Virus record (IMG/VR): IMGVR_UViG_3300032334_001259 | Span: 186,001-250,000 of that record | Length of the DNA stretch: 64,000 bases | Direction: 5' to 3' (one strand) | Shown: positions 35,583 to 59,798 of the stretch, in pieces | Layout: every line of letters begins with the position of its first letter | Numbering within the stretch: the stretch's first letter is position 1 | Translations under genes and position numbers: made by a program | Notes under the pieces: model-generated | Databases searched by the model: none | The model's input: the letters and a program-made list of their open reading frames with translations, nothing else | Told to the model about the DNA's origin: nothing

Positions 35583-36419
35583 TTATAAGTCAATTATTTC
35601 TGCAGTACCACCACCAATTTTATATCTTGGTTGTAGTTCACCAGATTTTCTCCATACCATGTAACTACTTTTTAATGGTTTAATTTCAAAATTGTCCAAA
35701 ACAAAACCTAACATAGTAAGTTCATTTATTACATGTTGATAATCAATGACGCTTAAATTATTTTCTATATTAGCTTGTTGCGCCCATACTTGGTCATTAG
35801 GTAAAAAATTAAAAACCCAAATACCACCTTCATAAAGCAAATCATAAACTTGTTTGCTTATATCAATAATATAATTTTCGTCAGCCTGTATAAATTCACT
35901 AAAACAATATACTATCCCAAATGATTTTTGAGGAAGAGATAACATATTATTATCAGGTATTTCATATTTTCTTAAACGACGATTTGCATAAAATGGATTG
36001 TTTAATGATGCTGCAGCTTCAATGCAAATATCATAATATCTATCTGCGATGTAGAAAGGTTCTGCAGATACACTAAATGGTAGAAATTGTCCACGACCTG
36101 GAAATAATTCTAAAGTAGGAACATTATTTGCGATATATTTTAATAATAAACTTGATAGATTAGTTACATCATATTCATTAAATTTGTTTGAATCAAGAAA
36201 AATTCTTCGTGACTCTAAACTTTGACCTTTCAATTTATTAACATAAACAGTTGTATTGTTTTTTAATATTGTTAAATCTTTTTCCAATCCTATTTCAAGT
36301 TTTTTTATTAATGTATCATATAAATCTGCAACTTCATTAAAGTATGTAGAATAGTTTTGAAAAACTTTTTTTGATTCTTTTAAAGAATTAAGGTGATTTT
36401 GTTTTTCTAATAGGTTCAT
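35583..36419 (-). CDS. Class I SAM-dependent methyltransferase-like protein
   Basis: LELFPGRG (motif I-like), LPQKSFGIVYC, LYEGGIWVF. Confidence 0.55.
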   Translation of the reverse strand: MNLLEKQNHLNSLKESKKVFQNYSTYFNEVADLYDTLIKKLEIGLEKDLTILKNNTTVYVNKLKGQSLESRRIFLDSNKFNEYDVTNLSSLLLKYIANNVPTLELFPGRGQFLPFSVSAEPFYIADRYYDICIEAAASLNNPFYANRRLRKYEIPDNNMLSLPQKSFGIVYCFSEFIQADENYIIDISKQVYDLLYEGGIWVFNFLPNDQVWAQQANIENNLSVIDYQHVINELTMLGFVLDNFEIKPLKSSYMVWRKSGELQPRYKIGGGTAEIIDL

Positions 36420-39082
36420 TAAATAAACTCAAATAAATTGGTAAAAGTATTGCTTATATTAGTTCTGTTAGTTATATCCCAACCTAACACACCAAGCAAG
36501 TTTTCTACTTTCTGACTTACAATTGTGTCTTCCATTTCATCACTATCAAATGGCATATCTTTAAACCATTGCGGAATACGTGTTTCATCTGTAGGATAAC
36601 CAATACTTGTTAATTTAAGTGGATTATCTTTTAGCTTACACACAATAGTTTTCATACCGTCAACGATTTCAATACTGCGAGTATCACCATGCATGCGACG
36701 AAGATTATTCCAATTGAGAGCGGCACGAACGTGACCTGGCATATTAGCACGACCTTCACGGCGTTCTGCTTCACCATAGAATGTTAATTTATTAACACGT
36801 TTTGGTGTTCCCTTTTCCCAACTTGGTAAGTTTTTAAACTTATATTTGAAATCACGAATTTCTTCAACAAGTGTTTCTTGGTCAACACCATCAAGTGTTT
36901 TTTTAAGAATGTCAGCAAGAAAGTCCTGAACAAGTTTTGGTGTATCACTGCGTTTTAAGTCTAAACCCATTGCTTTAAGTTTGCCAGATTTTCCTTCAAC
37001 ATCGAGACGTTTGTTTTCAAGGTCATAAATCAATACTGCATATCGTTTCTTTGTAATAAACAAACCTTTACTTGCAACCAATTCACGACCACCCTTAATG
37101 ATTTCACCAAGTTCTGGTGTAGTATGAAATGCTTCATACATAAACTTTGGAAACGTAAGGTTAACTTGTTCACCAATACTGTCATAAAGTTGGACACATA
37201 TCTCTTTGTTCCACTCCATGCGACCAGCTTCAACATCATCTTTGATAACTGGCCATGCAGAGAAATAAACAGAGTCAGTATCACCATAGATTATTGCCTT
37301 ACCAACATGGTCATGCTCACCAGTAATAAGTTGATTAACTGTAGCATCCATGTGCTTTGCAATCGTACGACCACATAGCGTAGTGCTTTGTCCAATACGT
37401 TGGTCAAAGAAACGACAACCTGCGTTAAGAATAGCACCGTATAGACTGTTCAAGTTAATCTTTTTAACCAACTGACGTTTATCCCAGAAAGCAATTTCTT
37501 TTGGGTCTTTGGCTTCTTTCTTTTTAGCTTGCAATTCTTTACGTTCACTATACCAACGTTCAAGCAAACTTGGCACAACACCTTGGCGTTCAAGGTTAAA
37601 AATAGTTCCATTGGCACTTAATGCCCATGGAGCATAATTGTCAAAAATCATATCATAAATTTGTGCTGCACTGTAAACTTCACTACTACCATTTTCCCAA
37701 TCAATGGTAATTTCTGTGCCAATTTCACGATTCATTACAGCAGTGTATTCTAATGTTGCAAACAAACCTTCCCATGCACCTGCAAATGATTTGCCTTCAT
37801 CTATGCGTTGTTTAAGTAGTGCTTCTGTCATAATAGGACGAAGTTGTCCAACGATGGTTTCTGGTCCCATATTGAGTGCACGAATAACGGATGGATACAG
37901 TGAGTTAATATCAATAGCACCAATCCAATCATGCAATCCTTTCTTTGGATATGCAACATAAGCACCAGCAACCTGTGTATTGACTTCTTCTTCACGTGAA
38001 CGGCGACTTGGAACCACTAACCCACGACGATGCGCTTCATTGATAATTGCCTGGTCTGTCACTGCAACAGCACCCATTGTAGTCTGCAACAACACGGTAT
38101 TATCATGCGCAATTTCGTTTGCCAAATCAAGAAAACGCAACTTTTTATCTAATTTGTTTAACAGTGCAACGTCCTGACGAGAATACTGAATAAAGGTTTC
38201 AAAGTCACGATTATATAACTGGTCAAGCGAACCTTCGTATGCTGTCTTGCGTTCATTGAGTTCGTATTCGCCAATAGCATCAAGGCTATAGGAATGGCGT
38301 TCTTCATAGGTATACTTGCGATATAGCACCATATAATCAAGATGAACACGACCTACCAAATCATAGGTATAACTGGTCTTGCCGTATTTTTCATATTCAC
38401 GTTCTTTAGGAAACTGATCCCATAAGCAGAAACGACGAGTATCGTCTTTGCTTAATACACGTGTAACACGATTAACGGTATATGGAATATCAAAACCTTC
38501 ACTATTCCAACCACTTAACACATCTGCGTCATCAATAAGTTCAAGGAATGTAAGTAGTAATTCACGCTCACTTTCAAACATAAATGTGTTTTCAAATCGT
38601 GCGCCAATCTTATTAGCTTCATCTATGCTCATTCCCTTTGGTGGCATGGCAAGTGTAATAAGTTGGTCGAGCCAATCCAAATAGATTGTTATTGCAGTGA
38701 TTCTGGTAAACGGGTCATCAGGAGTGCTGTAACCTTTTTGCGGATCAAAGTCCGTCTCAATATCGAAAAAGGCTGTTTGTAATTGTGGCGAATCTTTACC
38801 AAGATAATTTTCAGCGAGACAACGAAAAATTGGGTTGAGGTCACTTTCAAATATACGTTTACCTTTTTTTACTCCGTTTAATTCACGGCGTAAATCTTTA
38901 TTACTACGACAACTTACACGACGAACTGGGGTATCATAAATGCTGCGATGAGTGCCATTGTCATCTTCATAATAAAATTGATAGTTACAATTATACTCTT
39001 TATAAACACGTTTACCATCTACACGTTCAACAACATGAATGCGTTCTCGTGTTCTGTCATGGATGGCATCAACATAACTCAT
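36419..39082 (-). CDS. Family B DNA polymerase (T4 gp43-like)
   Basis: ExoI FDIETD, GWNSEGFD, DINSLYPS, KINLNSLYG, YGDTDS, KKRY; clamp-binding-like C-terminus TNLFEF. Confidence 0.97.
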   Translation of the reverse strand: MSYVDAIHDRTRERIHVVERVDGKRVYKEYNCNYQFYYEDDNGTHRSIYDTPVRRVSCRSNKDLRRELNGVKKGKRIFESDLNPIFRCLAENYLGKDSPQLQTAFFDIETDFDPQKGYSTPDDPFTRITAITIYLDWLDQLITLAMPPKGMSIDEANKIGARFENTFMFESERELLLTFLELIDDADVLSGWNSEGFDIPYTVNRVTRVLSKDDTRRFCLWDQFPKEREYEKYGKTSYTYDLVGRVHLDYMVLYRKYTYEERHSYSLDAIGEYELNERKTAYEGSLDQLYNRDFETFIQYSRQDVALLNKLDKKLRFLDLANEIAHDNTVLLQTTMGAVAVTDQAIINEAHRRGLVVPSRRSREEEVNTQVAGAYVAYPKKGLHDWIGAIDINSLYPSVIRALNMGPETIVGQLRPIMTEALLKQRIDEGKSFAGAWEGLFATLEYTAVMNREIGTEITIDWENGSSEVYSAAQIYDMIFDNYAPWALSANGTIFNLERQGVVPSLLERWYSERKELQAKKKEAKDPKEIAFWDKRQLVKKINLNSLYGAILNAGCRFFDQRIGQSTTLCGRTIAKHMDATVNQLITGEHDHVGKAIIYGDTDSVYFSAWPVIKDDVEAGRMEWNKEICVQLYDSIGEQVNLTFPKFMYEAFHTTPELGEIIKGGRELVASKGLFITKKRYAVLIYDLENKRLDVEGKSGKLKAMGLDLKRSDTPKLVQDFLADILKKTLDGVDQETLVEEIRDFKYKFKNLPSWEKGTPKRVNKLTFYGEAERREGRANMPGHVRAALNWNNLRRMHGDTRSIEIVDGMKTIVCKLKDNPLKLTSIGYPTDETRIPQWFKDMPFDSDEMEDTIVSQKVENLLGVLGWDITNRTNISNTFTNLFEFI

Positions 39083-39381: not shown

Positions 39382-39472
39382 GATTTAAGTCCTTTCACTG
39401 TCTAATATATATAATCTTTAAAAATAAGTCAATATAATATGTTTTGTCGTCGTAGTGTCATAGTATACAACT

Positions 39473-39498
39473 TAAATATTTGCGTACCATGGTGGTAC
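39473..39498 (+). promoter_or_regulatory. Late promoter TAAATA followed by a 5' hairpin GTACCA-TGG-TGGTAC
   Basis: Upstream of AAGGA SD and ATG 39527. Confidence 0.5.
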
Positions 39499-39526
39499 AC
39501 AAAATTCAAACCAAAAGGAACAACCC

Positions 39527-40177
39527 ATGAGATTAGACGATTTGGCCACACGTTTAGTTGCTGTTGAAGCAAAAGTAGCAACACTAACAGGCACTACAGT
39601 TAATACAAATGCACCTACTACTACAGAAGAACTTGATGCTCGCCTTTCAGTAGTTGAAGCACAAGTTGACCACCTAATTGCTGCAAAGACCGCAGAACAC
39701 ATTGATGCTATCGTTGCAGCACCAGCAGACGCTGCACCAGTTGCAGTTGAAGATGTTGTTGCTCTCTCACCAAGTGCAGACGTTCCAGAAGCAGCAGCTA
39801 TTGTAGCTGACGTTGTTGCAGATCAACATGAAGCAGATGCTATTGTTGATAGCGAAGTAGCAGTTATTATTGCAGCCGCTGTTTCAGCAGTTGTTAGCGC
39901 AGACCCAGAAGTTGTAACTGATCCAGTTGCTATCGCTGATGCTATCTCTGCAGCAGTTGCAGATGCACCAGCACCAACAACTCCAGAAGCAGTAGAAGCA
40001 GCAGTAGCAGCAGTTGCTGATATTATTGCAACTGCAACTGGCGTTGATGAAGTAGCACCAGAAGTTGTTGCAGCGGTTTCAGAAGCAGTTGCTACACCTG
40101 CTGACCCAGCACTTGATGCAATTGAAGTACGTCTTGGTACTGTTGAAACAAAGGTTGATTCACTTTTGGGAAACTAA
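39527..40177 (+). CDS. Acidic Ala/Val/Asp/Pro-rich protein with terminal coiled-coil repeats; lone + strand gene in a - strand region
   Basis: SD sequence, biased codon use, own terminator; contains no F, W, Y or C. Confidence 0.85.
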   Translation: MRLDDLATRLVAVEAKVATLTGTTVNTNAPTTTEELDARLSVVEAQVDHLIAAKTAEHIDAIVAAPADAAPVAVEDVVALSPSADVPEAAAIVADVVADQHEADAIVDSEVAVIIAAAVSAVVSADPEVVTDPVAIADAISAAVADAPAPTTPEAVEAAVAAVADIIATATGVDEVAPEVVAAVSEAVATPADPALDAIEVRLGTVETKVDSLLGN

Positions 40178-40215
40178 TAACCAACGCTCTGCGTTGGGTT
40201 AAAAAGTTTTTTTAA
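40168..40215 (+). other. Candidate programmed -1 ribosomal frameshift signal and 13-codon extension
   Basis: In-frame G_GGA_AAC, 6-nt spacer, stem CCAACGC/GCGTTGG; -1 frame reads LITNALRWVKKFF then stop. Confidence 0.6.
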
Positions 40216-40219
40216 TACG

Positions 40220-40246
40220 AAAGAGCCACTTCGGTGGCTCTTTTTT
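40220..40246 (+). terminator. Intrinsic terminator with cUUCGg tetraloop
   Basis: AAAGAGCCAC-TTCG-GTGGCTCTTT plus further T residues, between convergent genes. Confidence 0.9.
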
Positions 40247-40658
40247 ATTCTTCACCCTGTTTGTATAGGTTTAATAGTGTTTGGTATTGTTCATAAGCAT
40301 CCTTTAATGTAGGATACTTTTCTGTAAAGTATGGGTCATCTGCAATAATCATCATCTTATCTGCAATCATCATAACAGTTTTATACAATTTATCAAGATT
40401 TATTTCATTATGATTAGTTTTAATAATTGCATCACCCTTATCTTGTGGCGTAATTTGCAATTCTTTGCTTGTTATTGCTACTGATGGAGTTATTGTATTA
40501 AAATTGTATGATGAAGATGAACCAGTAGCAAGATACATTCCACTACCACCACCGCCTCCGCCGCCTATTGTGTTTATAGTAATAGAACCAGTAGGGGCAT
40601 TAGTTGGAAGTGTATAAGTGGTTCCTGATAATGGTATTTGAGTAATATTGGTGCTCAT
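40245..40658 (-). CDS. Hypothetical protein
   Basis: Low-complexity T/G/S N-terminus; KYPTLKDAYEQY; promoter TTGACT-17-TAAATT at 40664-40692. Confidence 0.55.
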   Translation of the reverse strand: MSTNITQIPLSGTTYTLPTNAPTGSITINTIGGGGGGGSGMYLATGSSSSYNFNTITPSVAITSKELQITPQDKGDAIIKTNHNEINLDKLYKTVMMIADKMMIIADDPYFTEKYPTLKDAYEQYQTLLNLYKQGEE

Positions 40659-40694: not shown

Positions 40695-41825
40695 TTATTC
40701 TACTCTTCTTTCTATGTCACAAGTAATACAATGTAAACTACCTTCCCAAAAAACATCATTTGACCATTCAACATAGATTGCAGTAATACCATCGTTTTTT
40801 AAAACTGAATAAAAGTTCCTGTCATAAAACGGTAAAATTATTGTTTCTGGATTAATTGTTAAACAATTAACTTTTTTGTTATTTTTTTTAAAAAGAGGTT
40901 GCCACTTATGTAACCACAAACTTGGATCGTATTGTTCTTGCACAAAAGAAGATGGCAAGGTTTTAATCCACTCATTACTATTTTCTGGAACATATATTTT
41001 TTTAAAATAATTAGATAAAACGTTTTCTTTATTAAAAGAAATTATTGAATCAGAATTTAAAATACAAATTTCACTATCTAAATGTCCAATTGCATCAACG
41101 TAAATTAATTCAATTCCCAAAAAGTTAAGCCAATTTTTCATCCATATTTTGCCTAATTCTGTTCCACTATATTTGCTAATAAAACACTTACTATTATGTT
41201 TTAAAATAGAAGCAGTGTGAAAATAATTTTTTGAATAATTTGAAATGTTATGTTTTATTAACCACTCCAATTTATTAAATGGATCAACTTTTTTTATATT
41301 TTTAACAAAACTTTTTGCATGATTTATATTTTTTGGTGGAAAAATTCCTACCATTTTGAAATAATCATCATATGTTTTTAAAATATATTCAGGATTAATT
41401 TCTACATCTTCTTGTAAATTTACCTCAGTTGAATTGACAATTAAATTACCATCCCTTAATAAATCATCACAAATTTTTTCTAGCCACAAATGTTGATATC
41501 TACGTTCAACATAAGGTCCATACGTTGTAAAAAACATATTACCATAGACCATATAAAAATCACGCATGTTTATAAGTGGGTCATGATTTATTATTTCAAC
41601 ACAATTATAATTTAACGGTTGCTTTGGTCGTAAAACTTTAACATTTAGTTGTTCTAAAATATTTTGAAAATTATTCAGTTCACGATTTGATTGTTCAACA
41701 ATACTAACAAAATCTTCTTGTTTTTTATCATCATACCTTGAAGGAATTTTATCATTTTCAAAAACAGAACCTAATATAACAGTTTTTAAACTATCATATT
41801 CATTCCAACAGTGTATTTTGGTCAT
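40695..41825 (-). CDS. Amidinotransferase family protein (pentein fold)
   Basis: WNEYDSLKTVILG, NMRD, GHLD, GSLHCITCD. Confidence 0.8.
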   Translation of the reverse strand: MTKIHCWNEYDSLKTVILGSVFENDKIPSRYDDKKQEDFVSIVEQSNRELNNFQNILEQLNVKVLRPKQPLNYNCVEIINHDPLINMRDFYMVYGNMFFTTYGPYVERRYQHLWLEKICDDLLRDGNLIVNSTEVNLQEDVEINPEYILKTYDDYFKMVGIFPPKNINHAKSFVKNIKKVDPFNKLEWLIKHNISNYSKNYFHTASILKHNSKCFISKYSGTELGKIWMKNWLNFLGIELIYVDAIGHLDSEICILNSDSIISFNKENVLSNYFKKIYVPENSNEWIKTLPSSFVQEQYDPSLWLHKWQPLFKKNNKKVNCLTINPETIILPFYDRNFYSVLKNDGITAIYVEWSNDVFWEGSLHCITCDIERRVE

Positions 41826-43187: not shown

Positions 43188-43595
43188 TTAAACTTTACCA
43201 CTTGGGTCCATAATAGGCGGTAGACCTAACTTATTGGTTTTATTACCAAATTTGGCGGCTTGACGCTGTGTTTCGCCAGGTTTTATATCAACTGTCATGC
43301 TCATAGCATAACGTGGGTCTTTTGCCATCTTTTTATTGCCAGCAACTACGCCTACACCAGCAGATTCACGGTAAACTTTTTCGGCACCAACAGGGTTAAT
43401 CTTAAATCCCCACATCTTTAATTTATATAATAATTCTTCTTCATCTTGTGCAACAAAATCATATTTGTTTGTATAACCATAATAGGTTCCATTAGGACGT
43501 TTTGTTACATATGCAGTTTCGCCTGTGCGTGGGTTATCATATACAGTGGCGTAAGTTGCTTCGTCTAACTGTGAGAATAATTCGTTTAATAACAT
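43188..43595 (-). CDS. Putative internal head protein
   Basis: Start moved to ATG 43595 (TAATG overlap); leader MLLNELFSQLDE-A. Confidence 0.55.
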   Translation of the reverse strand: MLLNELFSQLDEATYATVYDNPRTGETAYVTKRPNGTYYGYTNKYDFVAQDEEELLYKLKMWGFKINPVGAEKVYRESAGVGVVAGNKKMAKDPRYAMSMTVDIKPGETQRQAAKFGNKTNKLGLPPIMDPSGKV

Positions 43596-44239
43596 TACAT
43601 TAAGTCCCATTTTTTAAGAGACCATTTTTTAACCATATCACGTGATAAATTTACTTTGGTTGATATCTCTCTTGCTGTTAAACCTTCATTTTTTAACATC
43701 TGAATAGAATCAAATTGTTCTTTCGTTAAACCACGACGAATCATCGCTCGTTTCTCTATAATTGATTTTTCCCACTTTACCCAAGGTTTTTTCTTACCTT
43801 TATGTGATTCTGATATTTTCTTTTTAGATTCTTCCGAATGAATTTTACCGTGCATTCTTGTATAATTTTTAGCAATGCCTTTTAATGCTCTACTTCTTTT
43901 TACATTTGACTCTTCTGACATAATTATGCCATTATTGCCATCGCCACCTTTTGTAGAATTATATCCATTTTTATAGGTATCAAATTTTTCTATAAGTTCT
44001 ATTTCTTTTTGTTTAGCAACTTCTGCGGAATCAACCAATTCTAATAATTCTATCTTCCACACATCAGTTCCATACTTGTTTATAGCATTGTAAAATTTTC
44101 TATTGTCACGAATTTTTATAGCATCTTTCTTATGCTGTTCAAATCTTTCAAATATGGTATTACCAGTAAAACCAATATATGATTTACCATTTACATTATT
44201 TGTAATTTTATAAACAGAATAGGTTTTTGCAATTACCAT
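43595..44239 (-). mobile_element. Free-standing GIY-YIG homing endonuclease with NUMOD3-type repeats
   Basis: SVYKITNNVNGKSYIG, RFEQH, GYNSTKGG, HSEESKKKIS. Confidence 0.85.
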
Positions 44240-45174
44240 GCACGGCAACTCCAATATCTTGCAGTTGTTCTATCTTTTGCTGTTTTGCAATTGTGTCTGG
44301 CTCTAAAAGACTTTCTGCGTTTTGGATTTGACCGCTTTATTCTCATTTTTTTGTCACCAAAATTTACTTTAATTACTTTGCCTGTTTTTGGATTTTTCAC
44401 GTACACTTTTTTCTTTTTAACATCGCCCTTCATAGGTTTGCCAAGTGGAACTTTACGACCATGATATTCTGCTTCTGCAACGAGTGATTCATGAAGTTCA
44501 TCCATAAAGAAACGAACTTCTTTGTCGCCTTTGTTAAGAACAATATCATCATCGTCTTCGTCAATATCCCAACCCATGTTGCTTAACATTTTTACGGCTT
44601 GGGCATGCTTACCTTCATCACCATGCCACCACATCTTTGCCAAACGTTTTAGAGTTTGGTGATTATCTTGCATAGAAACTACTTCACCTTCTGCTACACT
44701 ACTTTTCTGTGCGATTGCACGTTCTGCAGCTTGGTTGATGTCCTCACGACTTGCGCTATATGGGCTTACATTTAGCGTGGTGATTTCTTCGTATGCAGGC
44801 GTCATTTCATCATCGGTTTTTACAACTTTTTTAAGAAGATGATAATTTGTCTTACGAACATCATCAGACTCATGACCACTTGTTGCAATAAAATAATCAT
44901 CACGATAATGCTTTACATAATTGTTGCCACCAAAATCACGTTCTCGCCAAAGTTTTGCTTCACCAAGATATTTGGTTTCAATTGCGCCTAAACTTTCTAA
45001 TAAACCAAGTAATTTTTCATCACCAAGTAATGTAATACTTTCGTTATCCATTTCCATAATTTCAGTATCTACTTGTAGAATATTACTGAACTCAAGATAG
45101 ACACCATCACCAATGGTTGGACGATCTTCGCTTATGGCTGTAAGTTTTTCAATTAGGGAACGCATATCACTCAT
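44233..45174 (-). CDS. Putative head-packaged polyprotein with basic C-terminal domain
   Basis: Leader ending AISE; C-terminal KVNFG...SFRARHNC...ARYWSC; TAAATA at 45194-45199. Confidence 0.6.
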   Translation of the reverse strand: MSDMRSLIEKLTAISEDRPTIGDGVYLEFSNILQVDTEIMEMDNESITLLGDEKLLGLLESLGAIETKYLGEAKLWRERDFGGNNYVKHYRDDYFIATSGHESDDVRKTNYHLLKKVVKTDDEMTPAYEEITTLNVSPYSASREDINQAAERAIAQKSSVAEGEVVSMQDNHQTLKRLAKMWWHGDEGKHAQAVKMLSNMGWDIDEDDDDIVLNKGDKEVRFFMDELHESLVAEAEYHGRKVPLGKPMKGDVKKKKVYVKNPKTGKVIKVNFGDKKMRIKRSNPKRRKSFRARHNCKTAKDRTTARYWSCRAW

Positions 45175-48948: not shown

Positions 48949-51900
48949 TTAAACTTCACGCAAAGACAATCTACCCGTCTCATATTCTCTTGTAAATGTA
49001 TCAAGAAGTGCTTGACCACCAGCTTCTTTATAGTGTTTTACCAATATTTCATATGCTTCCGTTGGTGTATCAGCACCAACTTCAATAAATCGATCAACAG
49101 AGGTATCTCTATATAATGCAAACACTTTACTTGCATTTGCACGACCAATACGGTCTACAATTACATTAGAACGCTGTGGCTGTGGTTTTGGTTGTGGTTT
49201 TGGTTTTCTTACACCAGTTTTATAATCAGTTGGTGTTACCAGATGATATGGTCCATTACCATTACTAATATTATTTGCAATGTTGCGATAACCGCCATTA
49301 TTAAGATTTGCTAATGCACTTTCTTCACTATCGCCACGAACACGAACAAATACAAAGTTATTTGTATCACTTACAACATAGAACTCAATCTTGCCGCTAC
49401 CAACAACAACAATGTGATTTATATCTTGCTTGCCTATGGCTTGACGTGCGTTTCTGCTGCCCCAATGCAATCTACGATTACCACGATAAACAATCATATT
49501 GTTATCAAATGCATTTGCATAATAATCAGCAATTTCTGCAACTTGATCTTGTGTATATTTTGCTGGATCAAAACGTGCAATAATATGGTCATCATAATCT
49601 TCAATGCGATATGCAAGAGTATTGTAAACCTGTTCAGCATTAGGTTTGCCATCCAAACCGTTTCGCTCAATTTTTATGATTTCACCATAAAGTGATGCAA
49701 TGTTATTATCACTATAATTATATCCTATAACATTCAAGTAATTTTTAACATCTTCTCTGCTAACATTTGGTATAAGATTTTTTACAGCTTCAAATTCTAT
49801 TTCATCAGTGTTTGCTTGATTTGGATAAAGTCCTAATCTGCTATACTCACGATTCTTTAAACCATTGCCCTGCATATAAATCGTTGTGACGTAAATGTTA
49901 AAATATGGGAACTTTAACAAATATGCTTGTGTATCCATATTGCGTTCATTTAGCCAATCATATGCAAGTTTAATCATTTCATATAGTTGTTCACCATGAA
50001 CTTCTACTACTTCATCACCTAATTTAGTTTCAATTTTAGCAGTAATTTTACCTTGACCGATTGGTTTAACTGGCTCACGTGACTTACGAACTGCTTGAAC
50101 TTGACGCACCAATTCTTCTTTGTCAATATCACCAGTAACATATTTTGCAAATATATCAACTGTGCTACTGTCTTTCTTTACGCTATCTACAATAAGTTTA
50201 TAAAACTTCTTGTGATATTCTTGTTTGCTATCTTCTGGATCAGCAGCCGCAGCCATAGCACGAACATAACGTAACATTGTGTTACGGATTTCATCATACT
50301 TTTCAAAGTAATTGCCACCAGCACTACGAAACTCAATATAATTAGACTTGATGTTTACACTTACGTAACGATCACCTTTAGTTCCACTGATAATTTTGTT
50401 TACTTCTCTATTAGTTTGGTCAAGTAAACCAGCACGTGCATCATCCAATATCTTTGGTAGTGACTTACGGAAATCACGTGTTTCTGTTGCTTTATATGCT
50501 TGGTCAAACATACTCTTTGTCCAACGGCTGTTTAGTCGTTCAAAACGGTCTAATACATACTTGTCACCAAGCAACAATATAAGTTTAAGGTGATTTATAT
50601 TTGCCATAGTTTGGTCAGGAACACTAACACCAATATGGAAACCTGTTGTGCGATTAGTATAATAACGGTTACGCTTTGCCCATGTGAATACGTTATTAAG
50701 TGCTTCAAGTGCATCATCAAGTAACATTGGTGGTGATACAAGTTCTACACCGCCATCTTCAAAGTCTTCTGGACTATCTAAACTGCTATCTGGTTCAAAT
50801 ATCCAGTAATCACCACGACTTGTGCCGTGATAACCACTGCTTTCAACTGCGCTATAACCTGTTGCATTTTCAAAACTATTCACTAAATCATCATAAGTTA
50901 CATCACCTGAACTACTGCCATCAGTCATATATGGCCAATCAAGACTATCAACATTTGTTTCACGATTAATGTAACGTGCAAAACCTTGCATTGTGTCAAT
51001 TTCGTGGATTCTTAAAAAGTCTTGCCAGTTTTCTTTATCGTTTTCATTTTCCCAATTTTCACGAACAGAAGATTCGGCTTCATCTTTTTGTTCTTCGGTT
51101 ACTTCACTGTAATCATCTACGCCTACTTCATCAGCAATTGCTTGTTTCCATTCATCGCTGTTTTCATATTCATAATATTGATCACTTACATAATCGCTAA
51201 AGTTTTCATAGAATGCTTCTAATGCACGTTCTACACTGCGACGACTATTGCCATAATCACCTTCTGTAAAGAAGTCTATAATCATACGTTGGCGATCTTT
51301 GTAAGTTTCATCTGCTGGAAAATCTTCATCTTGATCATAATCTGGCTCTGGGTCTTCTTCTTCACCTTGTAGACCAGGTACATACATTTCAGTTTCAAAG
51401 CCAACACGCATTTGTTGTGCAAACTCGCTCTTGGCAAATGCTTCCAAACTCTTTGGATTCATTTTTACTTCTGCAAGGAAAGATTCTGTTAGACTTTCTT
51501 CAATGCTTTCGTTGCGTTCTGGAACTGCTACAATAGTATAACCTGGTCCCATATTATGTTCAGTTGCCCAACTTTGTGCATAACGACGAGCAGCAGTTTC
51601 ACTTGCAGCAGTAAATGTATGGTAAACACCGCCCATACTACCTACAATATTATATGTAGTTTCTCCTTGCGGTGTAGCACGATGCTGTGCAATAATTAGT
51701 GGTGGTATTGTATTGCCAGCAATATCATAACCACGCTGTATTTCCCAATCTGCATATTGTCGTTGTTGTTCTGGTTGTGGTCTTGGTTGTGGAATTAGTT
51801 GACCTTGCGCATCCCATAGATTATTGTTGTTTGGTGTTCTAATTGCAATATTTGCTAATGATAGACCACGTTGTTGTGCAAAACTTTGTGCTGCTTGACT

Positions 51901-54900
51901 TGCTTGGTAAAAACTTCGTGCTTGTGTTGCTAATAATTCTGTGCCATCGCTTCGGTTTACAACAACATATGTTCCGCCAGATTGTTGTTGCTGTACTGGC
52001 TGTGCTGATGCACCGCCAACAGTTCTCCATTCCCACCTGCCATTTATAAGACGATTATCATCTGCCCATTGTCTTGCATATTGGTATGCTGCTGCTTGAC
52101 TGTCAGCAGTAAAACGATGAACAACACCGCCTTGCGATAGTATTTCAAATTGTTGTCCTGACTGTGATGCTTGTTGTGTTTCATTAGGTCTAAACAGATT
52201 GTATGAATCAAGTGCTATATTATTTCTATTTGCATATTCACGAGCTGCTGCAATAGCCTCTTGGGTAGTAGTATAAGTTCCTTGTGCAATTACTCTATCA
52301 CCACTACTGGTTCGCATTTGGAATACAGCGCCAGCAGTTTGGTATGGCATTTGCGGAATAGTTGCAGCAGTTTGTGTTTGTCCAACAGTTTGTGCATCTG
52401 TTTCACGGCGTGTCATAAATTGCGGAACATCAATCATTTCACCACTTGGTGCTTGTAGTTGAACACTATCAGGATAACCACCATCACGTGCAATTCTGCG
52501 ACCATAACCACGAGCACGATCCATTACATCAAGTAGTGTGCCAAACATAGTTACTTGACGTGAACCGTTTATAAACAACATAAAGTTTTGTTGTGCGTCT
52601 TGTGGTGTTTGTGTTTGTTGTGGTTCGCTACGGCGTGTTTCGTTGGCTGTAAAAACATTATAATATGTATTAACACCCATATAATTGTGTTTTAATTCAT
52701 AATTATTATAATTTACACCACGACCACGCAACCACCTAAATGCTAAATCAGAAGCATCGTATTTGTTATCTGCACGAACAATCTGCACTGCTAATTCTGT
52801 ATCTTTATAAACTATTTCATAACGATTGCTACCACTGCCAATACCAGTGTCACTTGCAACAAACGCCAGTGGTGGTAGTGCAGGCATTAAACCACTTACA
52901 TACGTAGCATTTTTCAAACGAACCAGCATTACATCTTGTAGATAATAGCCACTGTCACTGCTTGTCCAATTACGTGCATCGTCATAAACTTCATAAGGAT
53001 CATTGCCATAAAACTTTTTAAGAACTGTTCCGTTCTTGGTGCGAACTTCATATTCCTCTACACCAGAACCTTTTTTATCACGACTAATAGCACGTTTACG
53101 CTGTTCATTACGAACATGTGATAACAGTGCAGTCTTTGGAATAGTGCCGCTTACATATTGACTAAAATACTTGATTGTATCTGTATCTTCTTTTGGTGCA
53201 TTAGTTGCTAATAATTTATAAAACTTCTTTGCATATTCTTGCTTTTCTGCTTCTGGATCAATCGCAATACTCAATGCATAAACTGTGCGGTAAAGGGTGT
53301 TTATAACTTTATCTAAATCCATATCTAACCAATTACCGCCAGGACTACGAATCTCAATACGATTATCTTTGGTGTTGATACTGGTAAACTTATCAGTATT
53401 AGTATCGTGAATCATCTTACTAACAGTTTTGTTTAAGTTAGTGCGAATCATACTAATTGCTTGTTCTGCTTTGCCTGGATTACGCTTGATTACAGTGGCT
53501 ACTTTATCTAATGCACTTACTGCATAATTATTACCAAGACGACCGAATGTATCAAGAACATACTTGTCTCCTAAAAATAGTGCCATCTTTACATAATCAA
53601 GATTTTGCAAACTATAACCAGGCAGACTTACATTCATATGCAGACCAGTGGTTTTATTGGTATAAGCATTTCCACTCTTTGCCCACGCTGCAACTTTCTT
53701 TATAACATCTACCATTTGCGGAATAGTTAGTGGTGGACTTACAAACTCCCAACCTTCACCACCACGACCGCTGCTTGCATGCAAACTACTATCTGGTTCA
53801 ACCTTAAAGTAATTAGGTTTTTGGCGTTGGGTGTGATAACCACCACTTACTTGTATATCATAACCTACGGCTTGACTAAAACTACGTGCAGGCGGACCAT
53901 CGCCACGACCACGACTATTATCATAATCTGGTTCTGTCCAGTGCGGCCAATTTATAGTTCCACTAAAATAATTGTGAATGTCACTATATGTATCACCACC
54001 AATAACACTATCTAAAAAGTCTTCTACAAGTGAGCCGTCTTCGCTTGCTTTATCATACCACTTTTCATAGTTTTCACGAGTGAAGCGCATGTAAGCATCA
54101 ATTGGTGGTATTTCAGGAAATAGTTCACCTTGCTTTTCATAATCACGACCATAGGTTTTATCTAACCATACTTGATATCGTGTATCAGTTTGTCCACTTT
54201 CTTGACTATTTGCCCAATTATCAAACGCAATTTTAGCATAAGTTTCATATTCACCAGCAATACTTTCTTGAACTTGTTGTATATCACGGCGAGTATTATG
54301 GTCACCACGGAAGAATTCCATAATTGAATTTTGTAAATCAGTTAGATTATCTGCAAATATGTTTCCATCTTGGTCATAATCTGGTTCGCTGTCAAAGTCT
54401 TCGTATGGATCATAGTCATCGTCATCTTCAAACTCTGTAACGATAAGTTCAAACTCTAAACCAGCACGTGCAAGTGGCAATGCATCAACTGCTTTTTTAA
54501 GTGCAGTAGGACTCATTGCAACTTCATTTAATAATTCTTCTGTAATCAAACTATCGCCAAGCACTACATCTTCAAGCCAAGGAATCTTTGGACTTTGTTG
54601 ATCTCCACGTGGATATTCATCCCATGGAAACTTTGCTACTGCACGGTCAGTAAGAGTAGGACCACCACCAACTGTTCCAAGAATACTTGGTGCGTGTTCG
54701 CTTTGCTTTTGTGGTCCAAGTAAGCGCATAAACTTTACCTTGTCTCTTGGCATTACATAATCATAAGAAAGTTGGTTATCAATTGTTCCATCAATAATTA
54801 TATCTACTGCAATATTTTTGAATCCAAGTGCGGTTTGTGCATATACACGATAAGTCTTTCGCAGATCAGGCAACGTTCCTTGAACAAAGAATGTGACAGT

Positions 54901-57486
54901 TGCTTTTGCAAATCGCACATATCCAAGTTTAAATGCTGCTTCATATCCATCTATACCTTGGCTATGTAGATAACCTTCGTGATATTCTGGTGGAACATAA
55001 ACAACTTTACGATCAGGCAATATCCAACCATGTGTTTCATTTGGGTCAAGTGCTTCTTCAATGCTTTCAGCCTTTTGCATCCACTTACTTTTAATGTATT
55101 CAATTACACCCATAGTATCTTTAATATTATTCTGCTGCATGAATCGCACAATCTTGCGACCATTTTCATAATCAGTATCACCAGGCTTTCGTGAATTGCT
55201 TAATTCTCTACGTAAACCAAAGTCATCACCATCAATATTATAATAACGCAAGTCAAACAATATCTTGCTTGCTTCTTTGCTTAATGTTGAACGATTCTGT
55301 CCAAATAACAATTCAACATAAGGAGCCAAATAACTTTTTCTGCTATATTGCTTACGTGATGGTTGTGGACCTTTAAGGATATTCTTTGCCGCACCAATTG
55401 TAATACTCTTTGCAGTATTTTGTAATCTCCATGCTTCTTCATCGGCATAAAGATATGTTGGAATACCACGCTTTTTTGCAGCAAGTAATACACGGCGCAC
55501 CGCTGGACTTTGGAACTCATGTTGTTCTTTAATTAAAACATGAACACTCATTACTGGTGTAATTGCAATAGTGCCATCACGACTGAATACACGGTCTTCA
55601 CTTTCACGATGACGTGTAGTGCTTTGGTCATTCCAATAATCAATTGGTTTTACTTTATAATTTTGGTTTAACCAACGACCATTCAATACAAACATTACAG
55701 CACTATTACCAACATATTTGTGATAACCACCGCTACGACTGCGTGTAGTGCTTAAAAAGTATGGATAACCTTTTGGTTGTAGTTTATATTCCCAATCACT
55801 GCCAACAGTGTTGCTCAACTTAAACTCACCACTTGTTAATATTTCAGCGGCAGCAGTTGTTCCTGTGTAATGGTATAGAACATCAGTTGCTAATTCTGTT
55901 AGTGGTTCAACGCCTTCATCAAGTTGTGATTGTATACTTTTAACAATTTGTGGTGATGCTTTTCCGCTTGTCCATTCAGTTTCAATACTGCCATCAGGAT
56001 TCATCCAGAATAATGCTGCTTCACCATTGTCAATAGCATCAAGATAACGATCAGCAACATAGAAATTATGATGGAAATCATTTTCTGCAGCTTTTTCATA
56101 TGTATAGGTTGCTAATACATGACCATCACGTGTATCAAATACACCAATGTAAAATGGTTTACCACGGAAACTACCAACATTCTTGTTGGTGCTTTCTTCT
56201 AAATCTTTACGATGACTACGCTTGTAGTATGAACACCAACCATTAGGCGCAATCTTGCCTTTTACCGCACTACAACCATGAGGAGGACGCCACATAGTGC
56301 AGTGGTCGCAACGTTGACCATTGCGAGGCATTGCCTGATACTTTGCTTCGGCTTTGGTTGATTTTTCTGCGGCTTCTTCAACTTTCTTTTGTGCAAGATG
56401 CATTATATCTTTTTTAGGAACAACATAAACATCAATGGTTTTCTTGTTCTCTACATCAATCGCTTTTTTCATACGATTTAAACCATCAGCAACACTTAAA
56501 TGACCATCATCATTTTGTATTACAAGTAGCGGATAACGTGTGTCAGCATTCTGCATACGCTCACGCTGTGCTGCATTATCTTGCCACCAACTTAAATCGT
56601 GTTTAATTTTATCTAATGGAAAATTCTTGTGCAAATATTGTGGTTTAGATTGTGCAAACTTTAATACCGCTTCTACACTAAACTGATTGCCAGCATCATC
56701 GCCAAACTTACTACCGTGAAAGTAATCTTTTGCTTCATACTTTGGTAAACCGTATAAATCTAAATCAACACCGTGTGTAGAACCATAATAGGTATCATCT
56801 ACATTTGGTTTATATGGTTTACGACCAACCTTTACAAGTTTTGGTAAATCATCCCAATCACCACCAATGCCTGGTGCTTCTGTAATGTTTTCTTCAACTG
56901 CTTCGCCTAATCCCAAACCAATACGCACTGCTTGCATAAGTGTTTTGCCATCTACCATGATGTTTTGTGGGACTTGTGTAGCACGTTCAAAAGCATCTGC
57001 ATCACCACTCTTTGCTGCTTCACGTGCATTAGTAGCACTGGTTAGTCGTGGACTTTCAACAAATGTAAGTGGTTCAAATTTATAAAAACCGTGTGCAACT
57101 TCTTTGCCATTATATTGTTCAAGCACTGGACGCATACTTGCCATATCATCTTCGCCAGCAACAAAGGTTGCACTACGGAAACCTTTTTCATAAAGATAAG
57201 CAGCGGCTTGTAGGAATGTTTTAATATTTGGATCTTCTACGATATGACCTTTGGTTTCTGGATATAATGTATAAAGCCAACGTAGTTTTAAATCATATGG
57301 CAGTGGATTTTTTTTCTTGTCTTGTGACTTACTTAAAAATCCTGCCCATGCACCATTCTTTGCACTGGTAATTGTAGTTTGGATTAATCCCTGATGACCA
57401 AAATGTGGTGGATTTAGTCTGCCAAAGAAGAAAGAGATATGTGGTCCGCTTGCTTCTTTTAATGTGCTGTTAATAATTGTCATCAT
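48949..57486 (-). CDS. 2845-aa multidomain polyprotein: HIGH-type nucleotidyltransferase, ParB-like, HiPIP, ART-like, two amidoligase domains and repeat modules
   Basis: GRLNPPHFGH; VADGLNR; CDHC-x8-C-x12-C; YHYT/STT/ESE; two copies of GxExE...EPDSS...ExVSPP...TGxH...IExRSxGG. Confidence 0.8.
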   Translation of the reverse strand: MMTIINSTLKEASGPHISFFFGRLNPPHFGHQGLIQTTITSAKNGAWAGFLSKSQDKKKNPLPYDLKLRWLYTLYPETKGHIVEDPNIKTFLQAAAYLYEKGFRSATFVAGEDDMASMRPVLEQYNGKEVAHGFYKFEPLTFVESPRLTSATNAREAAKSGDADAFERATQVPQNIMVDGKTLMQAVRIGLGLGEAVEENITEAPGIGGDWDDLPKLVKVGRKPYKPNVDDTYYGSTHGVDLDLYGLPKYEAKDYFHGSKFGDDAGNQFSVEAVLKFAQSKPQYLHKNFPLDKIKHDLSWWQDNAAQRERMQNADTRYPLLVIQNDDGHLSVADGLNRMKKAIDVENKKTIDVYVVPKKDIMHLAQKKVEEAAEKSTKAEAKYQAMPRNGQRCDHCTMWRPPHGCSAVKGKIAPNGWCSYYKRSHRKDLEESTNKNVGSFRGKPFYIGVFDTRDGHVLATYTYEKAAENDFHHNFYVADRYLDAIDNGEAALFWMNPDGSIETEWTSGKASPQIVKSIQSQLDEGVEPLTELATDVLYHYTGTTAAAEILTSGEFKLSNTVGSDWEYKLQPKGYPYFLSTTRSRSGGYHKYVGNSAVMFVLNGRWLNQNYKVKPIDYWNDQSTTRHRESEDRVFSRDGTIAITPVMSVHVLIKEQHEFQSPAVRRVLLAAKKRGIPTYLYADEEAWRLQNTAKSITIGAAKNILKGPQPSRKQYSRKSYLAPYVELLFGQNRSTLSKEASKILFDLRYYNIDGDDFGLRRELSNSRKPGDTDYENGRKIVRFMQQNNIKDTMGVIEYIKSKWMQKAESIEEALDPNETHGWILPDRKVVYVPPEYHEGYLHSQGIDGYEAAFKLGYVRFAKATVTFFVQGTLPDLRKTYRVYAQTALGFKNIAVDIIIDGTIDNQLSYDYVMPRDKVKFMRLLGPQKQSEHAPSILGTVGGGPTLTDRAVAKFPWDEYPRGDQQSPKIPWLEDVVLGDSLITEELLNEVAMSPTALKKAVDALPLARAGLEFELIVTEFEDDDDYDPYEDFDSEPDYDQDGNIFADNLTDLQNSIMEFFRGDHNTRRDIQQVQESIAGEYETYAKIAFDNWANSQESGQTDTRYQVWLDKTYGRDYEKQGELFPEIPPIDAYMRFTRENYEKWYDKASEDGSLVEDFLDSVIGGDTYSDIHNYFSGTINWPHWTEPDYDNSRGRGDGPPARSFSQAVGYDIQVSGGYHTQRQKPNYFKVEPDSSLHASSGRGGEGWEFVSPPLTIPQMVDVIKKVAAWAKSGNAYTNKTTGLHMNVSLPGYSLQNLDYVKMALFLGDKYVLDTFGRLGNNYAVSALDKVATVIKRNPGKAEQAISMIRTNLNKTVSKMIHDTNTDKFTSINTKDNRIEIRSPGGNWLDMDLDKVINTLYRTVYALSIAIDPEAEKQEYAKKFYKLLATNAPKEDTDTIKYFSQYVSGTIPKTALLSHVRNEQRKRAISRDKKGSGVEEYEVRTKNGTVLKKFYGNDPYEVYDDARNWTSSDSGYYLQDVMLVRLKNATYVSGLMPALPPLAFVASDTGIGSGSNRYEIVYKDTELAVQIVRADNKYDASDLAFRWLRGRGVNYNNYELKHNYMGVNTYYNVFTANETRRSEPQQTQTPQDAQQNFMLFINGSRQVTMFGTLLDVMDRARGYGRRIARDGGYPDSVQLQAPSGEMIDVPQFMTRRETDAQTVGQTQTAATIPQMPYQTAGAVFQMRTSSGDRVIAQGTYTTTQEAIAAAREYANRNNIALDSYNLFRPNETQQASQSGQQFEILSQGGVVHRFTADSQAAAYQYARQWADDNRLINGRWEWRTVGGASAQPVQQQQSGGTYVVVNRSDGTELLATQARSFYQASQAAQSFAQQRGLSLANIAIRTPNNNNLWDAQGQLIPQPRPQPEQQRQYADWEIQRGYDIAGNTIPPLIIAQHRATPQGETTYNIVGSMGGVYHTFTAASETAARRYAQSWATEHNMGPGYTIVAVPERNESIEESLTESFLAEVKMNPKSLEAFAKSEFAQQMRVGFETEMYVPGLQGEEEDPEPDYDQDEDFPADETYKDRQRMIIDFFTEGDYGNSRRSVERALEAFYENFSDYVSDQYYEYENSDEWKQAIADEVGVDDYSEVTEEQKDEAESSVRENWENENDKENWQDFLRIHEIDTMQGFARYINRETNVDSLDWPYMTDGSSSGDVTYDDLVNSFENATGYSAVESSGYHGTSRGDYWIFEPDSSLDSPEDFEDGGVELVSPPMLLDDALEALNNVFTWAKRNRYYTNRTTGFHIGVSVPDQTMANINHLKLILLLGDKYVLDRFERLNSRWTKSMFDQAYKATETRDFRKSLPKILDDARAGLLDQTNREVNKIISGTKGDRYVSVNIKSNYIEFRSAGGNYFEKYDEIRNTMLRYVRAMAAAADPEDSKQEYHKKFYKLIVDSVKKDSSTVDIFAKYVTGDIDKEELVRQVQAVRKSREPVKPIGQGKITAKIETKLGDEVVEVHGEQLYEMIKLAYDWLNERNMDTQAYLLKFPYFNIYVTTIYMQGNGLKNREYSRLGLYPNQANTDEIEFEAVKNLIPNVSREDVKNYLNVIGYNYSDNNIASLYGEIIKIERNGLDGKPNAEQVYNTLAYRIEDYDDHIIARFDPAKYTQDQVAEIADYYANAFDNNMIVYRGNRRLHWGSRNARQAIGKQDINHIVVVGSGKIEFYVVSDTNNFVFVRVRGDSEESALANLNNGGYRNIANNISNGNGPYHLVTPTDYKTGVRKPKPQPKPQPQRSNVIVDRIGRANASKVFALYRDTSVDRFIEVGADTPTEAYEILVKHYKEAGGQALLDTFTREYETGRLSLREV

Positions 57487-59722: not shown

Positions 59723-59798
59723 TGCTGTGTTCCCTATAAACATAGAGTAGGTAGGGCTGCAACCCGTGACCTACACTATTATTTATAATTTAATTATA

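Follow-up and report, generated by a model that had tools for sequence, protein, structure and literature searches.

Phages are known to use -1 programmed ribosomal frameshifting mainly in tail chaperones, capsid proteins and a few enzymes (PMC10885494). One case is the G/GT tail assembly chaperone of phage lambda, in which GGGAAAG shifts about 4% of ribosomes with the zero-frame stop immediately downstream (PMC3296357); the tail-chaperone frameshift is conserved among long-tailed phages and haloarchaeal viruses. G_GGA_AAG is highly shift-prone in E. coli, and G_GGA_AAC is used by the archaeal virus HCTV-1 (PMC5009743). A frameshift near the stop also extends structural proteins, as in the major head protein of Lactobacillus phage A2 (PMC10885494). 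T7 gene 10A/10B is a further example. In E. coli dnaX a heptamer ending A_AAG, a spacer of about 6 nt and a stem-loop, together with an upstream Shine-Dalgarno-like stimulator, yield the truncated product of the tau/gamma pair. A separate body of work concerns short C-terminal amphipathic helices that bring MinD, FtsA and FlhG to the membrane; that of MinD is about 15 aa, cationic, and needs two or more copies to bind (PMC6803595).

We examined a gene of an uncultivated freshwater jumbo phage in a 64,000-nt stretch (the window; positions 186,001 to 250,000 of IMG/VR record IMGVR_UViG_3300032334_001259). We conclude, with a probability of about 0.85, that its end is a real -1 programmed frameshift cassette making a 229-aa isoform of a 216-aa protein; this figure does not extend to any membrane role. 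Production of the isoform is inferred from sequence comparison alone.

The locus and its conservation in relatives

The initial annotation had described the heptamer, spacer, stem and -1 frame at the end of this gene, and these were all confirmed at their positions (Table 1), except that the terminator begins 3 nt, not 4 nt, after the -1 stop. The zero-frame protein has, as claimed, no F, W, Y or C; it contains A 56, V 38, D 21 and E 17, with D+E 38 against K+R 7.

Table 1. Features of the frameshift locus, in window coordinates.
Position	Strand	Feature	Detail
39472..39478	+	Candidate T4-type late promoter core	TTAAATA box, about 54 nt before the ATG
39479..39503	+	Hairpin at the predicted 5' end of the mRNA	Core GTACCA-TGG-TGGTAC, 39484-39498
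39515..39519	+	Shine-Dalgarno sequence	AAGGA; AAGGAG in most relatives
39527..40177	+	Zero-frame ORF, stop included	216 aa, acidic, Ala/Val-rich, predicted all-helical, pI about 4; ends TTG GGA AAC TAA TAA
40168..40174	+	Slippery heptamer	G_GGA_AAC; codons Gly215-Asn216, preceded by the G of the TTG Leu codon
40175..40180	+	Zero-frame stop and second in-frame TAA	TAATAA; together the 6-nt spacer
40181..40197	+	Candidate frameshift-stimulating hairpin	CCAACGC-TCT-GCGTTGG; 7-bp stem, 3-nt loop
40174..40215	+	-1 frame extension	13 codons, LITNALRWVKKFF, plus stop TAA at 40213-40215
40219..40244	+	Intrinsic, bidirectional-looking terminator ending the transcription unit	Strong; 11-bp stem, T run

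Within the window alone these features could be chance: in-frame X_XXY_YYZ heptamers occur at 0.66% of codon positions, so that about 0.4 of 64 ORFs are expected to end in one, and 2 do. The other (59799-60275, - strand, A_AAT_TTG TAA) opens only 2 codons in the -1 frame. Relatives settle the question. We collected 83 distinct 3' ends from 121 loci of lake metagenomes; all have a stop directly after the heptamer, followed by T in 82 of 83, and an open -1 frame of 11-28 codons, mostly 13 or 18, with consensus [VLI]-I-[ST]-[SG]-[VIF]-[KR]-x-[WF]-[FIL]-x-x-[LIF]-F-K. Among 74 distinct relatives, stops within 12 codons occur in 1/74 for the -1 frame, against 42/74 (zero frame) and 58/74 (+1 frame); BLOSUM62 per residue is 1.99 against 0.24 and -0.22. 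pN/pS is 0.58 against 0.98 and 1.22, with synonymous divergence as saturated as in the gene body. The three antisense frames are interrupted in 19-63 of 74, and an antisense gene was rejected. Stop-codon readthrough was likewise rejected, since the zero frame beyond the stop is not conserved and has a second stop immediately after the first in 30 of 83 loci.

The -1 frame has no ATG, GTG or TTG upstream in 83/83 and is closed 4-5 codons upstream in 63 of 83. Termination-reinitiation at the stop, giving a separate 12-18-aa micropeptide without any frameshift and using the overlapping Ile/Val codon as a non-canonical start, was considered, because the stop overlaps an ATH or GTA codon (TAATA, TGATC and similar) in the manner of classic TAATG or ATGA coupling signals, and the purine-rich GGGR might act as a weak ribosome-binding site. 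Three loci (one group) have a true ATGA overlap. This reading is very unlikely: 80 of 83 loci have no ATG, GTG or TTG anywhere in the accessible -1 frame, where selection would be expected to fix ATG; what is conserved is a run of three or more G followed by AA, while the better Shine-Dalgarno match AGGA (TTA/CTA + GGA) never occurs although TTA and CTA make up 68% of Leu codons; and a stable hairpin 3-9 nt after the would-be start would inhibit initiation.

The heptamer is constrained beyond what the protein needs. We found G_GGA_AAN in 61 of 83 relatives, G_GGG_AAR in 19, A_GGG_AAR in 2 and G_GGC_AAG in 1. The Leu codon is NNG in 81/83 against a 20% background, while the adjacent Leu matches background; Gly is GGA/GGG in 82/83 against 17%, and Asn is AAC in 14/14 against 27%. 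The 22 imperfect heptamers need a G:U or mismatched re-pairing, so strict tandem slippage may not be the whole mechanism, and the AAC A-site codon of the window is the less slippery, 'mammalian-like' type in E. coli (PMC5009743). No conserved upstream Shine-Dalgarno-like stimulator was found (the Lys codon 8 positions upstream is AAG in only 52/83). Transcriptional slippage was rejected because there is no homopolymer longer than 3-4 nt at the site.

A hairpin starts 3-9 nt after the heptamer in most relatives (mean z -2.1). It is much more stable than synonymous recodings of the same peptide (-9.2 against -3.5 kcal/mol, mean z -3.0, 81% of loci below -1.64), and compensatory changes occur in two registers; one relative has the C-G to T-A swap of the window's own stem. 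A single consensus hairpin works only partly (69% and 58% of cells paired) because at least two stem registers exist. Splitting by register gives 92-94% paired, but this figure is biased by the selection, so the double-sided changes and the recoding comparison carry the argument. Part of the 18-aa form of the tail (K-S-G-T-K) overlaps downstream hairpin sequence and may be shaped by it.

The alternative that nothing past the stop is translated, with only a 3' stabilising or backup-terminator hairpin conserved and the heptamer a coincidence of the C-terminus, draws on the chance level in the window, on a terminator-like score of the hairpin on the - strand, and on conservation of LLG[K/N] as protein. 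It is already disfavoured and very unlikely. Hairpin sequences differ widely between clades while the peptide pattern persists, the conserved L-F-K motif lies beyond the hairpin, W/F alternation at position 8 needs two base changes yet stays aromatic, only the -1 sense frame of the six is stop-free and similar at the amino-acid level, and the synonymous bias at the heptamer cannot come from protein constraint.

Conservation in homologues had been proposed beforehand as a check of the recoding, and it was passed. Homologues down to about 45% identity keep all three elements (heptamer, hairpin and -1 peptide), among them the divergent lineages L156 (about 45% identity) and L161. Three of the four divergent lineages without a G_GGR_AAN heptamer (L157, L160 with G_GGC_CAG, and L162) lack peptide and hairpin too; a fifth, L159, keeps the bases in a shifted register and also lacks both. 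Locus L062 (G_GGC_AAG) has a 7-codon deletion that removes the hairpin.

The acidic body and its gene

More than 462 homologues were found, nearly all 213-219 aa and ending LLG[K/N]; gene callers miss the extension in every one of the more than 460 database entries. The family is narrow (37 representatives at 50% clustering), is abundant in the JGI lake series, and is absent from deposited phages, with no tblastn hit in 50,697 phage records. None of 156 retrieved proteins carries the tail in-frame, so there is no natural fusion to confirm that body and tail act as one chain; the homologues of 226-232 aa are N-terminal start-call extensions. 'Aromatic-free', as the initial annotation had it, is exact for the window protein but only approximate for the family (mean 1.5 F/W/Y per body, though zero Trp in 78 bodies). 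Some relatives carry an insert of roughly 95 aa rich in aromatics and Cys.

Body and tail were analysed apart. An AlphaFold2 model of the body is all alpha (pLDDT 83, pTM 0.74). Pfam gave only sub-threshold coiled-coil hits (HalX 20.1 bits, below the 23.2 cut-off), PHROGs gave none, and the best PDB profile hit had E = 0.28. Three Foldseek searches of PDB and BFVD folds with two AlphaFold models, including that with pLDDT 83, gave at best E of about 0.5-1 with TM about 0.2. In the language-model atlas the nearest named cluster is a capsid scaffolding protein, but at 0.66, below the tool's own lead threshold.

The gene is a lone + strand gene beside the DNA polymerase in a - strand block, outside any head module. 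Its neighborhood varies between relatives (glycosyltransferases, metallophosphoesterases, a nitroreductase) and is uninformative. A TAAATA box is present in 69 of 73 distinct leaders of relatives, median 52 nt before the ATG, and tail-fibre genes of this window carry ATAAATA 22-27 nt before their starts; promoter function is inferred. After the box, relatives have 62 distinct hairpin sequences at the same place (GTGCCA..TGGCAC, GTGTCA..TGACAC, GGTGAGTG..CACTCACC), and in 86% of leaders the 34 nt after the box fold with z < -1.64. A role in stabilising the mRNA is a possible inference.

The cationic tail and its putative role

Across 74 distinct peptides the tail was confirmed as basic, aromatic and amphipathic: net charge is +3 (range +1 to +4), there are about 3 aromatics in 13 residues, and the hydrophobic moment peaks at 100 degrees, with z about 2 against own shuffles in 96% of peptides. 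The bodies have pI about 4 and no Trp.

In our interpretation the gene is strongly expressed and probably late. Most ribosomes would decode Gly-Asn and terminate at 40175. A fraction, paused by the hairpin and possibly by the adjacent stop, would slip back one base, read CUA AUA ACC and onward, and terminate at 40213. Comparison of relatives shows that the -1 frame is protein-coding, that it can only be reached by a shift within the last 4-5 codons, that the heptamer is selected at the nucleotide level, and that the hairpin is selected as a structure. Tandem P/A-site slippage, stimulation by the hairpin, the efficiency of shifting, the existence of the trans-frame protein and the function of the tail, including any membrane binding, are inferred.

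The interpretation in the initial annotation, a frameshift producing a fixed ratio of soluble and membrane-anchored isoforms, is thus partly supported: the recoding is upheld, while membrane binding and a fixed ratio remain inferences from resemblance to MinD/FtsA-type helices. Reversible binding to the anionic inner membrane is the most likely single role for the tail, yet it is only tentatively proposed, on physicochemical resemblance alone. If it is true, and if the protein oligomerises at all, the frameshift rate would set how many membrane-binding tails an assembly carries.

A live, though doubtful, alternative is that the tail docks onto another protein. It could resemble the basic C-terminal coat-binding helix of an acidic helical scaffolding protein such as that of P22, or the sliding-clamp-binding tails at the C-termini of T4-type polymerase and late-transcription factors, or simply extend the C-terminal coiled coil. 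The acidic body, predicted to be all-helical, the weak scaffolding match and a plausible late gene are consistent with this, and the DNA polymerase of this window ends ...TFTNLFEFI, resembling the W-F-S-N-L-F-K form of the tail in several relatives; this resemblance spans a few residues and has no statistics. Conserved positive charge with interfacial Trp/Phe is, however, more typical of membrane-binding helices than of clamp tails, and the location outside any head module, the variable neighbors, the narrow family and the lineages lacking the tail are unlike an essential scaffold or replication factor.

It is very unlikely, and pure speculation, that the tail is an antimicrobial-peptide-like membrane disruptor used at lysis and masked by the acidic body, as anionic pro-regions mask cationic peptides. 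Phage cationic lysis peptides and cationic C-terminal helices on endolysins exist, and the tail is a cationic Trp/Phe-rich amphipathic peptide of a gene with late features, but no lysis genes were identified next to the gene in the window or in relatives, and there is no signal peptide or cleavage site.

A more speculative and rather unlikely extension is that recoding serves as a stoichiometry dial. The abundant acidic protein would assemble through its repeated L-x-x-R-L-x-x-V-E-x-K-V coiled-coil segments, and the frameshift rate would fix how many subunits carry a weak membrane-binding helix, tuning avidity as MinD dimerisation does but through translation instead of nucleotide state. To our knowledge this would be the first bacterial or phage frameshift whose sole payload is a membrane-targeting helix; literature searches combining frameshifting with amphipathic or membrane-targeting helices returned no papers, and we found no prior description.

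Comparison with described systems

The locus places a frameshift in an unannotated protein family of uncultivated jumbo phages, with an unusually small payload on a very acidic body. It is a clean natural example of dual coding, because the same 40 nt is constrained both as peptide and as hairpin, and the two co-evolve: W-containing tails go with one stem register and F-rich tails with another. Several natural loss-of-function lineages are available for comparison. If the tail is a membrane anchor, this would show that phages can set the soluble-to-membrane-bound ratio of a protein at the ribosome; either way the cassette gives an experimental handle on a protein family with no assigned function.

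With lambda G/GT the locus shares the heptamer class (G_GGA_AAG in lambda and most relatives here, G_GGA_AAC in the window and in HCTV-1), Gly-Lys read in both frames and the stop immediately 3' of the heptamer; in lambda, and by analogy here, the result is a fixed minor fraction of a C-terminally extended product. It differs in that the extension is 13-18 aa and not a whole T domain, the gene does not lie between a major tail or tube gene and a tape-measure gene, the body has no similarity to gpG and no PHROG or Pfam chaperone hit, and a conserved downstream hairpin is present, whereas lambda is not known to need one. As in T7 gene 10A/10B and the A2 major head protein, a frameshift in the last codons of a late, abundant protein (here by inference) would make a minor longer isoform; those extensions, however, are tens of residues and become part of the capsid, while here the body is not a recognisable capsid protein and the tail is a short cationic amphipathic helix. 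With dnaX the locus shares the bacterial-type layout of heptamer, spacer and stem-loop, but shifting in dnaX truncates the protein whereas here it would extend it, and the upstream stimulator of dnaX has no conserved counterpart among the relatives. The tail matches the helices of MinD, FtsA and FlhG in its extreme C-terminal position, length of about 10-15 residues, positive charge and helical moment with hydrophobic and aromatic residues on one face, while the bodies are not homologous, and in those proteins the helix is encoded in-frame and regulated by nucleotide state, not supplied by recoding.

The locus and its setting

The initial annotation described a 216-aa ORF ending in a slippery heptamer, followed by a hairpin and a short open -1 frame, and we found this observation to be correct to the base. 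The ORF ends TTG GGA AAC TAA TAA, with G_GGA_AAC in the X_XXY_YYZ register. The zero-frame protein has no F, W, Y or C, has 38 acidic against 7 basic residues, and has a pI near 4. Taken alone this arrangement is not beyond chance: in-frame heptamers of this form occur at 0.66% of codon positions in the window, and 2 of 64 ORFs end in one. The other case opens only two -1 codons before a stop and is a chance case; just downstream of it is the window's only exact T4 late-promoter consensus, which occurs once against about 9 expected and so is depleted.

Features of the window, with positions and strand where assigned
Feature	Position	Strand	Description
Leader of the ORF	39440-39526		conserved among relatives
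216-aa ORF	39527-40177	+	only + strand gene within the - strand block
Heptamer	40168-40174		G_GGA_AAC
Hairpin	40181-40197		7 bp with a 3-nt loop, after the 6-nt spacer TAATAA
Stop of the -1 frame	40213-40215		-1 frame reads LITNALRWVKKFF
Terminator	40219-40244		strong
strand block	20746-63957	-
DNA polymerase	36419-39082	-	ends ...NISNTFTNLFEFI
137-aa protein	40245-40658	-	convergent downstream neighbor; poly-Gly tract, sub-threshold Gly_rich_2 and minor-tail hits
376-aa protein	40695-41825	-	convergent downstream neighbor; marginal arginine-deiminase-fold C-terminus (22.5 bits, just under the 22.8 cut-off)
219-aa ORF	43595-44254	-	GIY-YIG-like N-terminus by eye (...YKITNNVNGKSYIGFT...); may be a homing endonuclease
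2845-aa ORF	48949-57486	-	single ORF
Second ORF ending in a heptamer	59799-60275	-	A_AAT_TTG TAA
T4 late-promoter consensus	59780-59787	-	TATAAATA
Radical-SAM cluster	11637-16841	+	three consecutive paralogous radical-SAM-domain proteins (479, 452 and 387 aa) downstream of the tail-fibre genes, unusual as an auxiliary cluster for a phage

The window comes from a jumbo myovirus with T4-like replication genes. Its DNA polymerase is 44-49% identical to those of Sinorhizobium phage Phosso, Agrobacterium phage Atu_ph07 and Serratia phage BF, and identical copies of the locus lie on IMG/VR contigs of 117 and 338 kb. The leader is conserved among relatives (fetched loci L001-L155), with two or more TGTAAT/TGTAAC/TGTCAC boxes about 70-95 nt before the ATG (36 of 78 leaders), a TAAATA box (69 of 73, median 52 nt before the ATG) whose core also lies before the tail-fibre genes of this window, a hairpin with 62 distinct, covarying sequences at the predicted mRNA 5′ end, and a strong AAGGAG ribosome-binding site. 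This looks like a late promoter with a possible regulator site and a 5′ stabilizer hairpin, and we infer from it that the gene is late and strongly expressed.

Comparative evidence for the -1 frame, the heptamer and the hairpin

The protein family has more than 462 members in metagenome protein sets, almost all 213-219 aa long, yet it collapses to only 37 representatives at 50% identity and has no member in 50,697 deposited phage records. We fetched 155 loci, which gave 83 distinct 3′ ends. In every one a stop directly follows the heptamer position, and the -1 frame continues for 11-28 codons (mostly 13 or 18), encoding [VLI]-I-[ST]-[SG]-[VIF]-[KR]-x-[WF]-[FIL]-x-x-[LIF]-F-K.... The sequences are related by descent, so that counts of loci overstate the number of independent events; least affected by this are the frame contrasts, the synonymous-recoding control, the neighboring-codon control and the pattern of co-loss.

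Conservation of the three sense frames over 12 codons past the stop
Frame	BLOSUM62 per residue	Sequences with a stop (of 74)	pN/pS
-1	1.99	1	0.58
0	0.24	42	0.98
+1	-0.22	58	1.22

The single exception in the -1 frame is locus L062. Synonymous divergence past the stop (pS 0.68) is as saturated as inside the gene (0.67), and the three antisense frames are interrupted in 19, 27 and 63 of 74 sequences. The stretch past the stop is therefore protein-coding in the -1 frame only. No ATG, GTG or TTG lies in the open part of this frame upstream in any of the 83 loci, and in 63 of them the frame is closed by a stop only 4-5 codons before the extension; the only route in is a -1 shift within the last few zero-frame codons, which is where the heptamer sits. 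In one clade (L059, L058 and L071) the last codon AAA plus the stop TGA creates ATGA, a classic stop/start overlap, at the first codon of the -1 frame (tail MISGVRSKFRSLV...), and these few loci could also make the tail as a free peptide.

Codon usage at the heptamer
Position	Observed	Background in the same genes
Leu codon before Gly ends in G	81/83	20%
Neighboring Leu ends in G	16/83	20% (at background)
Gly is GGA or GGG	82/83	17% (GGT, the commonest Gly codon at 54%, never appears)
Terminal Asn is AAC	14/14	27%

The heptamer is selected as nucleotides. Of the 83 loci, 61 have the canonical G_GGA_AAN, 19 have G_GGG_AAR, two have A_GGG_AAR and one has G_GGC_AAG. In G_GGG_AAR the P-site re-pairing is perfect, while the A-site Lys tRNA would re-pair on GAA through a first-position G:U. 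These imperfect forms mean that strict tandem slippage may not be the only pathway, and single P-site slippage of the Gly tRNA on G_GGG is an alternative.

Most loci have a hairpin that starts 3-9 nt after the heptamer, 72% have a stem of 6 bp or more, and the mean z against shuffles is -2.1. As the key control we kept each peptide and recoded it with synonymous codons drawn from the usage of the family itself: observed mean MFE is -9.2 kcal/mol against -3.5 for the recodings, mean z is -3.0, and 81% of loci fall below -1.64. The stems fall into at least two registers with quite different sequences, such as CCAGCG/CGCTGG, GCTTCCGAAG/CTTTGGAAGC, AACGTCCGA/TCGGACGTT and AAAATCCAA/TTGGATTTT. Both registers beat shuffled and slid controls on the full alignment, and within registers 5 of 8 and 4 of 9 pairs show double-sided changes, although the 92-94% paired in those subsets is inflated by how the subsets were chosen. 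Locus L005 carries the exact C-G to T-A compensation of the stem found in the window. In the minimum-free-energy fold of the window, the heptamer region (GGGAAACU) pairs with the U-run at about 40205-40212, enclosing the 7-bp hairpin in a longer two-tier stem (-32.3 kcal/mol for 40160-40255, z -6.6).

The three elements are kept together or lost together. A subfamily of 312-327 aa (L005:3001-3936, L062, L160; proteins P0005, P0083, P0103 and P0122) carries an insert of about 95 aa after residue ~152 that is rich in Cys, Trp, Tyr and Gly and has no Pfam match; L005 keeps the frameshift cassette, while the insert-bearing L062 and L160 have lost it.

Heptamer, hairpin and -1 peptide at divergent or exceptional loci
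Locus	Heptamer	Hairpin	-1 peptide
L156 (about 45% identity)	G_GGA_AAA	present	ITSGFRKLFRSLF
L161 (divergent body)	G_GGA_AAA	-21 kcal/mol	longer tail ending RWFKSLF
L160	G_GGC_CAG	none	no amphipathic peptide
L157	A_GTA_AAA	none	no matching peptide
L159	same bases, shifted register	none	no matching peptide
L162	A_GGA_AAA	none	short, no match
L062	G_GGC_AAG	removed by a 7-codon deletion	truncated (11 aa)

Properties of the tail and the body

The body and the tail were analysed apart. Across 74 distinct tails the mean net charge is +3 (range +1 to +4), and about three aromatics occur in the first 13 residues. Position 8 is Trp in 51 and Phe in 12, and position 13 is Phe in 62. The hydrophobic moment peaks at 100 degrees, with z about 2 against each peptide's own shuffles in 96% of cases. 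The 78 bodies have a mean pI of 4.06, 1.5 aromatic residues on average, and no Trp at all. The F-T-N-L-F core at the C-terminus of the DNA polymerase resembles the W-F-S-N-L-F-K form of the tail in several relatives (for example loci L151 and L154), which may be coincidence, or a hint that the tail is a clamp-type docking peptide.

AlphaFold2 with a 57-sequence alignment gives a confident all-helical model of the body with eleven helices (pLDDT 83, pTM 0.74), for which we found no significant match in the PDB or BFVD. Nothing reaches threshold in Pfam, PHROGs or the PDB sequence profile. Three segments repeat an L-x-x-R-L-x-x-V-E-x-K-V-x-x-L motif: the N-terminus, residues about 34-50, and the C-terminus.

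Interpretation and comparison with known systems

Comparison among relatives establishes a coding -1 extension that is reachable only by a shift at the last codons, selection on the slippery site at the nucleotide level, and selection on a correctly spaced hairpin as a structure. The remainder is inferred from sequence alone: that a fraction of ribosomes slip on G_GGA_AAC to produce a 229-aa isoform, that the adjacent stop may add to pausing, and what the tail binds. Binding to the inner membrane is our tentative preference, with another protein surface a somewhat less likely possibility. The interpretation in the initial annotation, a frameshift that adds a membrane-targeting amphipathic helix, is therefore supported only in part, its membrane role resting on resemblance.

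The MinD membrane-targeting sequence is likewise a C-terminal cationic amphipathic helix of about 15 residues, and its weak affinity requires two or more copies (PMC6803595); the resemblance is real, but it is only a resemblance. Literature searches that combined frameshifting with amphipathic or membrane-targeting helices found nothing, and a recent survey of phage frameshifts lists tail chaperones, capsids, lysins, polymerases, methyltransferases, transposases, RusA/RuvC and Cro, but nothing like this case. G_GGA_AAG is described as highly shift-prone in E. coli, and G_GGA_AAC is the g-t shift site of the haloarchaeal virus HCTV-1 (PMC5009743). Lambda G/GT uses GGGAAAG, reads Gly-Lys in both frames, has the stop immediately downstream, and shifts about 4% of the time (PMC3296357), which is only a reference point for the efficiency here. 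The inferred mechanism is canonical -1 frameshifting with a known heptamer; what is new is the gene family, which is uncultivated, unannotated and of orphan predicted fold, the very short cationic amphipathic payload, and the clear dual coding of peptide and candidate stimulator.
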